In this document: piece by piece, positions 9,301-12,300 of the stretch
How the letters are laid out: each line of letters begins with the position of its first letter
Position numbering within the stretch: position 1 is the first letter of the stretch
Source: Camelus ferus
Lineage: Eukaryota
Reading direction: 5' to 3'
DNA length: 64,000 nt
NCBI RefSeq assembly: GCF_009834535.1
Contig: NC_045714.1
Span: forward strand, 15,066,001 to 15,130,000
Notes under the pieces: generated by a model
Told to the model about the DNA's origin: nothing
Database searches by the model: none
The model's input: only the letters and a program-made list of their open reading frames with translations
Program-made: the position numbers and the translations under genes

Positions 9301-12300
9301 TCATGGTGTGAAGTGCCTCACAGCGAGCCCTGCACTGTCCCCTGTCCGGGCCCCGCGGGAGCCCCCAGCCCCACAGCACCTACCCCATCCCCCCCGCAGG
9401 CTGTGCCCGTACTACCTCTCCCGGAGCCTGGCACAGCAGGCCGACCTCACAGCGAGCCCTCCACTGTCCCCTGTCCGGGCCCCGCGGGAGCCCCCAGCCC
9501 CACAGCACCTACCCCATCCCCCCCGCAGGCTGTGCCCGTACTACCTCTCCCGGAGCCTGGCACAGCAGGCCGACATCATCTTCATGCCGTACAACTACTT
9601 GCTGGACGCTAAGGTGAGGGCTCAGCCTGTGTCCCTAAGGCCCCTGACGGCAGGGGCGTCCCTGTCAGACCCCTGCCGGTTCGGTTCCTGGGATTAGACT
9701 CCCGCTTGGAGCAGCAGGCTGGTGCCAGTGGACTGGGTCCCCCTCACTGCTCAGGGCTCAGTTGACGACCAGCCCGGGGCTGTGGCTCTTCTGTGCCATC
9801 CGGGGGTGTGGGCTGGCAGGGTTGGGAGACCCCCTTGTCCTGCTGTTGGCGTCTCTCTCCAGTTGGACGCCCGGGAGCATCCAGCCCTAACGCTGGCTTT
9901 AAGACTCCTGTGTGTGCAGCCTCTGTTTCAGCTGTGCTCGTGGTGTGAGCACTGCGGGTGGCCTCCTGTCTGGGCCCCTTGCTCACGCGCTGTCCCATGG
10001 TAGATGTCAGTGGAGAGCCCGCCGAGCTGGGATGCAGGGCTGAATCAGCCAGCATCTTTGAGTGCGGCTGTGCTCGGGTGATGGGGTAGGGGTGAGATGT
10101 GCGGCCGCGGACAGGAAGCCTCGGAGCAGTGGCTGACACGGGGACGCAGTGCATGTGAGCACAGCTCAGCGGGGCCGGAGCGAGTGGCTGGAGCAGAGGG
10201 GACAAGGTGCGTGGGGGTGCAGGGGCACGAGGTGAGGTGGCCCAGACTCGCACCTGGAGAGCTTGCAGGTTTGCCCAGGATTTGTATGTGATTCTCACAA
10301 AGTGGTGCTTTCAGCCTGGCTGCCTGGCCCGGGCTCCACCTCAGAACAGTTCTGTCACAGCTGATGAGCTGGTTCCAGAACTCATGTGGAAACCAGAGAT
10401 CAGACAGAACAAGACGGGCTTGACAGAGGACAGGGCGGCTCACGCTTCTGACTGCAGGGCTCAGTGTGGAGCAGGATGCTGGTGGGGATCGCAGGGTGGC
10501 ATCCAAGACAGACCCACACGTGTGGCAGCTGGCATTTGACAAACTTGCCTGAGTAGTTCAGTGGGGCAAGGGAAGGTGGGTTTTTGTGGTTTGTTTTTTC
10601 CACAAATGGTGCCAGAATAGCTGGACACCTATTTGGGAAAGGATGAATCTCAGCTGATACTTCATGCAGTTTAAACCTGAACGTCAAAGTTTGAGCCTTC
10701 AAAGCCCCAGGAGGAAGCACAGGGGGTCGTTGTGATTTGGGGGCAGTGGAGACCTTTCAGCGTAGACACACAAGGCACCAGCAGTGGGGACAAAGCTGAT
10801 GAGTTGGTCTTCGCCACCACTTAAAGCTTGGCCTCTGAAAGGATCAGGAAGTCCAAGGGGTTAAATGTGTGCTCAGAGAGAGAGGTACCTCCGCTACACC
10901 TGTGTGCCTCTGACCGCACCCAAGGGGGCACTCGGGCCAATTCCTGGTACTCAGCCCCGCCAGCGCTGGGAAAGGCCAGACAGACCCTCCACCTGAGAGA
11001 CAGTGGGGTGGCCAATCAGCCTGTGCCTAGAAGACGTTCCTCATGGCCGGTTTTGAGGAGATGCAGGTTAGGACCTCAGGCCGTGACATGCACACTGAAA
11101 TGGCTCAGACTACAGAGACTTGAGATGACTGGTGTTGGGCAGGGACCTGGAGCACTGGATCTCGGGACATGGCTGGGAGCACAGCCACGGCAGAGCCTCG
11201 CGTGGCCAGCTCTTCAGAGCTCCCTGCGTCACCAGAGCCTCGACAGCCCCGACTGTTAGCGGGTGGTGTCCCTTGTGTCCCATGGGCAGGGAAAGGGGGC
11301 CCTGCTGCTACGTGCAGCCGCCCACCTGGGTCAGAACGCTCACCCAGAGCAGTCCCAGTGGCTGGTGTGTTGTGTGTCCTGCTTTGGGTGGTGGCCACAG
11401 GGTGCCCACTCTTGTCAAAACTCAACTGCACATGTGAAGTGGGCAATCATACGAAAAATAAGCTTCCAGTTAAGTCAGTGGAGAGAAACTCTGCTGCCAG
11501 ACCCCACCCAGGTCGTTCCGTGACCCTTGGGGGTTTAGAAATCCCTCACAAGCTGGGCTGGGCCTCCTCCTCCACCCTGTGGCTGCGTGCTGTGGTTGGG
11601 GTCACAGGACTGCTCCCTGTGCAGTGAGTGTCGCCAGGACGGACACCACCAGCTCAGCGGGGTGGGAGCAGTGCCCGCAGCCCAGCCAGCTGACACCCCA
11701 GCAGGAGGTGTGAGGGTTGGGCCATGAGGGCAGGGCTGCCCCACTTGGCTCCACTGTCAGCCCACTTGCTGTAGAGTCGCCGGGCACACGGCATCGACCT
11801 GAAGGGGACGGTCGTGATCTTTGATGAAGCTCACAACGTGGTGAGTGTTGGGGTGCTGTTCCCGATGCCCCCTTCTGCCCGCCTGCTTTCCTGTGCAGAA
11901 AAGTGCAGGCTTTTCTGTCCACCTGGCACCTGCTGTCAGGGCCGAGCACACCTGGGCCAGGTGGGCTGGCTGGCCTGTGCCCACATCTCGCAGGACCCCT
12001 GGGCCCCTCCTGCCTGCCACTCCTCTTCCCTTTGTCCCTGGTGGCCTCCTCCCCGCCCCCCTCTCCACCTGCTCCCTGCAGCCTCTGTCAGGCCCAGGAG
12101 CTCCATCTGCGGGAATGCTTGGCCTTGACCAGGGCACTGGAGGGAGGCCCCTTGGGGAGCCTGCGTCCTGGGACAGAGGTGGCCACCCTCAGCGCCCTTG
12201 GTTCCAGGCTCTTTTGTTGCCCCGGGGGCCAGATCTGACCTTCGAGAGGCGCTAAAAGCCAGGGTTTCGCGGGAAATTTCCTAGTTGTAAAACGTTGCAG

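Follow-up and report, generated by a model that had tools for sequence, protein, structure and literature searches.

RTEL1 and its fourth iron-sulfur ligand

The window, that is, the whole 64,000-nucleotide stretch of Camelus ferus DNA analyzed here, contains the entire RTEL1 gene, which a tblastn search with horse RTEL1 placed between an ATG at 3328 and about position 30770. Across window positions 2828-30244, every base agrees with the C. ferus RTEL1 locus (XP_032317487.1, GCA_009834535.1), and the canonical 28-residue exon 8 matches the Pfam family DEAD_2 (PF06733, E = 5.5e-11). Together, these results confirm the identification of the gene as RTEL1 in an earlier sequence-only reading. Camelid RTEL1 proteins were found through a search with RTEL1 region 1161-1290, and their loci were then taken via the annotated proteins; a 90% protein cluster consisted of 28 named camelid RTEL1 proteins. 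None of the 120 proteins listed by a separate search with the part of horse RTEL1 spanning residues 140-270 was camelid. In region 1161-1290, camel RTEL1 is unusually close to that of the horse.

RTEL1 is an essential Fe-S helicase (PMC3061057), and enzymes of this type are impaired when their Fe-S cluster domains are altered (PMC13255074). The latter, a 2026 review, gives the 4Fe-4S ligands as C145-C163-C172-C207 in RTEL1, C283-C298-C310-C350 in FANCJ and C116-C134-C155-C190 in XPD. The exons in the window encode all four Cys ligand motifs in order, and camel RTEL1 proteins carry the ligand motifs upstream of and at the CPYY motif, the latter at residue 205. The exon 8 peptide aligns with FANCJ 348-375 and with XPD/Rad3 ~188-217, for which structures have been solved, and its CPYY Cys falls opposite FANCJ C350 and XPD C190. 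Because of this alignment and the published ligand list (PMC13255074), the CPYY Cys can be assigned as the fourth 4Fe-4S ligand (human C207), in agreement with what had been proposed for the duplicated Cys described below.

A tandem array across the intron 7-exon 8 boundary

A repeat search of the window identified a 129-nt head-to-tail duplication (9316-9444 and 9445-9573) with 99% identity, and Tandem Repeats Finder (TRF) reported a single array at 9316-9578 with a period of 129, 2.0 copies, 98% matches, no indels and a score of 512. The sole mismatch between the two copies found by a scripted comparison was G9332 versus C9461, and the 129-bp duplication with one mismatch noted previously is therefore real as a feature of the assembled sequence. 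Each 129-nt unit consists of the last 84 nt of intron 7, including a C-rich tract and the AG, and the first 45 nt of exon 8. The duplicated piece had been read as the end of intron 7 joined to the start of exon 8, which is correct, with 46 exonic nucleotides, which requires amendment: the unit has 45, and the 46th identical base (C at 9316, 9445 and 9574) is microhomology at the breakpoint. The features of the locus, all on the + strand of the window, are as follows.

8829..8904, +: RTEL1 exon 7 (coding exon 6), ending in phase 2 (..CAC AA); from the sequence and tblastn with horse RTEL1 residues 181-206
8905..9315, +: unique part of intron 7, upstream of the array; from the sequence
9316..9444, +: repeat copy 1, composed of a copy of the intron end (9316-9399) and a copy of the exon 8 start (9400-9444); G at unit offset 17 (9332)
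9398..9399, +: upstream candidate acceptor AG; from the sequence and the copy comparison
9445..9573, +: repeat copy 2, which contains the intron end and exon start of the authentic site; at offset 17 (9461) it has C, which is the state of the single alpaca copy
9527..9528, +: authentic acceptor AG, used in all annotated camelid RTEL1 models seen
9529..9613, +: canonical exon 8, 85 nt, encoding CPYY with the fourth Fe-S ligand and the strand to PYNYLLDAK; donor GT at 9614-9615
9574..9578, +: breakpoint microhomology, CATCA versus CCTCA at the unit start, a 4/5 match; from the TRF array end at 9578 and the sequence

The AG dinucleotides at 9398-9399 and 9527-9528 allow exon 8 to start at either 9400 or 9529, and the donor GT lies directly after 9613. 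At either start, the first base of the exon completes a Lys codon begun in exon 7, such that the acceptors called earlier at 9399/9400 and 9528/9529, and the in-frame position of the upstream one, are borne out by the sequence. From -84 to +45, the upstream and authentic acceptors share one and the same context. All four Camelus loci compared also agree in the final 60 nt ahead of the array, and alpaca is near-identical there.

Only one other comparable array is present in the 64-kb window and, therefore, such an array is uncommon as a chance feature. The 129-nt unit is 50% C. Relaxed G-quadruplex motifs with loops of up to 12 nt are found on the minus strand of the array region; a strict G-quadruplex was considered as a cause of instability and rejected, as the motifs were of this relaxed, minus-strand type only.

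Copy number varies among camelids

The RTEL1 locus of the window (L004) was compared with those of four other assemblies (L001, L002, L003 and L005), in each of which the distance from the end of exon 7 to the unique part of exon 8 reports the length of the array.

Alpaca, GCA_048564905.1 (L003): unit at 6542-6670; distance 584 nt; 1 copy
C. ferus, GCA_009834535.1 (L004, window): distance 714 nt; 2 copies
C. bactrianus, GCA_048773025.1 (L002): array at 6489-6875; distance 843 nt; 3 copies
C. dromedarius, GCA_036321535.1 (L001): array at 6566-6952; distance 843 nt; 3 copies
C. dromedarius, GCA_000803125.3 (L005): array at 6562-6948; distance 843 nt; 3 copies

The three copies of the Bactrian camel and of both dromedary assemblies are in register. 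A sequence word spanning the repeat junction occurs once in the C. bactrianus locus and once in the window, and twice in each of the dromedary loci. Copy number thus varies between lineages (1, 2 and 3, as judged from one or two assemblies per species), and the array is a Camelus-specific, copy-number-variable minisatellite lying across an intron-exon boundary. An expectation that the window would be 129 bp longer than other camelids holds for alpaca, which has one copy fewer, and fails for the dromedary and the Bactrian camel, which have one copy more than the window.

Whole-genome DNA runs are consistent with these assemblies. Runs from two organisms, covering at least 16 samples from several studies, contained 1.00 of 40 sampled 31-mers of 9200-9700, while those of a third organism (organism C) contained 0.90. 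The computed 31-mer content for the same interval is 100% in C. ferus and C. bactrianus and 93.4% in dromedary, which is without only the 31 words that carry C at 9461, and the observed run shares match these computed species shares. The shares of 1.00 imply, therefore, that every Bactrian or wild-camel sample has both the G and the C state.

Two explanations that locate the difference in the assembly rather than in the animals were weighed. The C. ferus assembly may under-count the array, its true state being three copies of which one was collapsed during assembly. This is a serious possibility, somewhat short of even odds: the two copies in the window are identical to copies 2 and 3 of the Bactrian camel, and Bactrian copy 1 equals copy 2 over its first 102 nt, which would have made a collapse easy. 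Another probable small error lies within RTEL1 of the same assembly, namely a private extra T near 29742 that is absent from the four other assemblies. Moreover, every 31-mer of the window is contained in the three-copy Bactrian allele, and the run shares fit two or three copies alike. A real two-copy allele is, however, just as plausible, as minisatellites of this type vary between haplotypes (PMC3087553). The second explanation, raised in the sequence-only reading, is that two haplotypes or overlapping contig ends were laid in tandem by the assembler, with G/C as a heterozygous SNP; although the single mismatch, the exact tandem layout and the presence of at least one private 1-nt difference between the C. 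ferus and other camelid assemblies in RTEL1 would fit such a pattern, it is extremely improbable because three other assemblies, from other individuals and species, carry the repeat junction twice each, alpaca has one copy at the same place, making the lineage difference real, and at least 16 samples hold all 40 words with both the G and C states, which a segregating SNP would not produce in every animal. The doubled unit in the window is no assembly error; it represents one allele of a minisatellite that varies in copy number.

Differences between copies and the age of the array

The copies differ at few unit offsets.

Offset 17: G throughout the dromedary array (all three copies) and in the upstream copies of C. 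ferus and C. bactrianus, whose last copy has C, as does alpaca; Ala versus Pro if coding
Offset 25: T in a single dromedary assembly (CamDro3), in its copy 2; synonymous if coding
Offset 56: T in dromedary copy 1, a C-to-T change that gives rise to a CTCAC motif resembling a branch point; always intronic
Offset 103: changed in Bactrian copy 1, in a Leu codon; synonymous if coding
Offset 127: changed in Bactrian copy 1, in an Ala codon; synonymous if coding

Besides offset 17, the upstream copies therefore carry three substitutions that would lie in coding sequence, two in Bactrian copy 1 and one in copy 2 of CamDro3, all of them synonymous. As evidence of selection this pattern was rejected, since the events are too few and the result is not significant.

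Over the whole locus, C. bactrianus differs from the window at 0.17% of sites, dromedary at 0.72-0.77% and alpaca at 3.9%. Because alpaca has a single copy and Camelus has several, the comparison places the origin of the array after the split of camels from llamas and alpacas. The 0-2 differences per 129 nt would fit an origin around or before the dromedary-Bactrian split, and homogenization between copies is another possible reason for their similarity. Slippage in highly C-rich DNA, at a short stretch of microhomology, probably gave rise to the array, which is not the only boundary duplication in the gene: an older 55-nt duplication lies across the exon 15 donor of RTEL1 (window 22412-22527) and is present in all five assemblies, including that of alpaca.

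The reading frame of a longer exon 8

Read in the coding frame, 9401-9613 encodes 71 residues without a stop, in which CPYY occurs twice, separated by a Pro-rich stretch. Splicing to the upstream AG would, as had been predicted, lengthen the exon by 43 open codons and supply a second CPYY, and in each allele compared the unit keeps the frame and contains no stop. If the upstream site were used, the order from exon 7 onward would be CPYY and the next helix segment, a Pro-rich linker and CPYY again, with one further repetition in the three-copy alleles. The consequences for the cluster would depend on which Cys is engaged. Either the first Cys would bind the cluster and the linker would then break its connection to the following strand, or the last Cys would bind and a loop with a free Cys would be inserted just before the ligand.

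The open frame itself was given no weight and was rejected as a sign of coding selection, since this sequence, which is 50% C, is free of stops in every one of its three forward frames. Protein homology searches with the 71-residue long exon returned read-through ORF fragments and RTEL1 of other species only, and the insert was present in none of them. Likewise, the two ORFs of 129 and 99 residues that begin with GTG and run across the array had no exact database record.

Boundary-spanning repeats in other genes

The camel array is tandem, contains the splice boundary within its unit and varies in copy number, and this is the structure of the boundary-spanning minisatellites known from other genomes. 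The closest parallel is offered by the 'mirage' repeats of amphioxus, which include acceptor-side BflGb6 units of 150-160 nt composed of an intron 3' end and the 5' part of the next exon, present in 6 versus 3 units on two haplotypes, with regular splicing reported from RT-PCR (PMC3087553). Like these, the camel array is head-to-tail, spans the boundary and has the layout of intron end plus exon start, and many amphioxus units keep the AG, as the camel copies do. Copy number differs between haplotypes in amphioxus (6 versus 3) and between species in camelids (1, 2 and 3), and the regular splicing reported in amphioxus agrees with the canonical gene models of camels. Unlike amphioxus, the camel case is mammalian, involves two or three nearly identical copies, affects an essential Fe-S helicase and repeats an exon part that encodes a metal ligand. 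The camel unit is also in frame, such that misuse would lead to a longer protein and not to a frameshift.

In human genes, minisatellites at exon-intron borders are known from the donor side, including the 37-bp VNTR of F7 intron 7 and those of IFI6 (6-16), CBS, LMNB2 and PDGF (PMC1557585). In F7, LMNB2 and PDGF the authentic site alone is used, whereas in IFI6 and CBS a few pseudo-sites are used, and the F7 pseudo-donors become functional once the authentic site is mutated (PMC1557585). The camel repeat resembles the F7 VNTR in spanning an exon-intron border, reiterating identical splice sites and varying in copy number, but in F7 the repeat is on the donor side with pseudo-sites downstream, while in camel RTEL1 it is on the acceptor side with pseudo-sites upstream. 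The 55-nt duplication at exon 15 is a direct donor-side counterpart of the F7 type within the same gene. The use of pseudo-sites in IFI6 and CBS shows that the authentic-only rule is not absolute. Engineered globin splice-site duplications, which served as early tests of scanning models and are cited in PMC1557585, used the proximal copy only in one set of constructs, while another group observed the opposite. As in these constructs, two identical acceptor units compete for one donor in camel RTEL1, but the constructs were artificial and their results conflict, yielding no firm prediction for the camel gene.

Choice between the acceptors

The sequence gives no preference between the acceptors, as the units are identical at every position considered by standard splice-site scores. 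A preference is suggested by the gene models and by the parallels above, from which the last acceptor would be expected to dominate, with a probability of roughly 0.7, and the upstream copies to act as silent intronic pseudo-acceptors. All 16 annotated camelid RTEL1 proteins that cover exon 8, drawn from four species, are canonical, with one CPYY and no 43-residue insert (X1-X3 of C. ferus, X1-X3 of C. bactrianus, X1-X2 of C. dromedarius together with a GenBank KAB model from that species, and seven from alpaca), RefSeq XP models being among them. This comparison should be read with the size of the protein cluster in mind: 15 of its 28 camelid members were listed. The last acceptor is favored because these proteins are uniformly canonical, because all RTEL1 models are also canonical at the exon 15 donor duplication, and because the amphioxus mirage repeats and the human F7 repeat behave in this way. 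In an essential Fe-S helicase, fixation and expansion of the array in three species would also be most readily understood if cells continue to produce the canonical mRNA.

Mechanistically, each copy repeats a full acceptor unit consisting of a probable branch region, a polypyrimidine tract and the AG. The spliceosome probably uses mainly the last copy, which is joined to the real exon body with its donor 85 nt downstream, so that the upstream copies would only make intron 7 longer, by 129 or 258 nt, and a single CPYY would be retained in the protein. Low-level use of upstream acceptors may give in-frame forms with 43 or 86 additional residues. Overall, camel RTEL1 protein is probably normal.

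An alternative is that one or more upstream acceptors are used in a substantial share of transcripts, producing RTEL1 with 43 extra residues in the Fe-S domain, or 86 in three-copy alleles. This appears unlikely, as does its corollary that camels carry a second or third candidate CPYY ligand with a Pro-rich linker in an insert whose length follows the copy number of the array. The identity of the acceptor units speaks in its favor, as do the position of the upstream one, which is transcribed first and lies nearest the exon 7 donor, and the duplicated-site experiments in which the proximal copy alone was seen (cited in PMC1557585). The frame is compatible with it in every allele, and the three would-be-coding substitutions of the upstream copies besides offset 17 are synonymous. 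Against this, the insert occurs in 0/16 of the annotated proteins that cover exon 8, and one would expect an insertion of 43-86 residues at the fourth ligand to disturb folding or the binding of the cluster; all three camel species nonetheless carry the array, two of them in three copies. A length divisible by three has a one-in-three chance of occurring and all three frames are open, so that no coding selection is shown. In addition, the intron-derived part of the unit carries G-triplets and long C tracts. Such elements are typical of introns and tend to be repressive when present inside exons.

The RNA data bear on both readings. Among the RNA runs listed, 0.61-1.00 of the sampled words of 9400-9613 were present, compared with 0.386 expected for mature canonical mRNA, the runs listed being those with the highest shares; two of them are small contig sets, of 20 and 144 million letters, labeled as organism C. 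A long exon could account for array words that extend far past the canonical exon, and pre-mRNA, genomic DNA or mislabeled runs could equally explain them. The spliced junction of exons 7 and 8 had no match in the JGI metagenome contigs scanned. The two-isoform reading proposed from the sequence is possible, although the gene models lend it no support. In its most specific form, in which at least some camel tissues would make RTEL1 whose Fe-S domain contains an insertion of 43 or 86 residues, with extra fourth-ligand motifs and a length dependent on the minisatellite, it is doubtful, and more so than upstream acceptor use as such.

Implications for camel RTEL1

With the tandem repeat established as biology, models of the camel RTEL1 gene must choose among two or three equivalent acceptors. 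The class of boundary-spanning minisatellites was already known, and the camel array is new as a mammalian, acceptor-side, in-frame case in which the repeated exon part encodes a ligand. It provides a rare mammalian acceptor-side counterpart to the donor-side minisatellite of human F7, a model of splice-site choice, and the differences in copy number among the assemblies of three camel species constitute natural allelic contrasts.

In humans, defective RTEL1 causes telomere disease. Should the upstream sites be used, the effect would fall on the fourth iron-sulfur ligand of this telomere-disease helicase, and an insertion isoform, if true, would amount to a naturally occurring length polymorphism of the protein, located within the metal-binding module of a telomere helicase that is essential, as well as a natural test of how the spliceosome chooses among identical acceptors 129 nt apart. 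If the upstream sites are silent, which is more likely, the array would illustrate how exon-border duplications can persist harmlessly, absorbed into the intron.

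Additional duplications and indels in RTEL1

The 129-nt array at the intron 7-exon 8 junction is accompanied by a second, 55-nt tandem duplication in RTEL1, which spans the exon 15 donor and lies at the following positions:

Window (C. ferus), 22412-22527: 55-nt tandem duplication spanning the exon 15 donor
L001 (C. dromedarius RTEL1 locus, GCA_036321535.1), 19889 and 19944: two copies
L002 (C. bactrianus, GCA_048773025.1), 19711 and 19766: two copies
L003 (alpaca, GCA_048564905.1), 19426 and 19481: two copies
L005 (C. dromedarius, GCA_000803125.3), 19825 and 19880: two copies

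Because this duplication was found in all five camelid assemblies, alpaca among them, it is real and predates the 129-nt array. All annotated proteins follow the canonical reading over it (SQSYK to VHIHPD). Close to the site of the 129-nt array, the annotated RTEL1 model of the vole Microtus ochrogaster (P0165) shows a further duplication, in which a 22-residue exon 9 peptide occurs twice in tandem; this is either real or an assembly or annotation artefact.

Near window position 29742, C. ferus carries one additional T (GGGAC-T-GACGA) relative to both dromedary, the Bactrian and the alpaca assemblies, and this base likely accounts for the frameshift reported in RTEL1 exon 32. The extra T is either confined to C. 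ferus or a mistake of the assembly, and may explain why the C. ferus RefSeq RTEL1 models contain 1092, 906 and 905 residues, versus 1277 in other camels.

Properties of the 129-nt unit

The end of intron 7 is also open in the exon 8 frame in other mammals (proteins P0001, P0002 and P0004), where gene callers produced read-through ORFs, e.g., one reading PPHPTPPRR and then LCPYY; that the camel unit has an open frame is therefore nothing special. C makes up 50% of the coding strand of the unit (array at window 9316-9578). On the minus strand of this interval, each unit contains two G-quadruplex-type motifs if loops of up to 12 nt are allowed (relaxed motifs), whereas a limit of 7 nt leaves none; a contribution to slippage is possible but unproven. 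One dromedary copy carries a private substitution:

L001, 6566-6694: copy 1 of the 129-nt unit, C-to-T at unit offset 56

This change, confined to the most upstream dromedary copy, converts CCCAC to CTCAC, a consensus-like branch-point motif located 27 nt before the AG of that copy. As a candidate branch point, CTCAC might make the first of the dromedary acceptors a stronger one.
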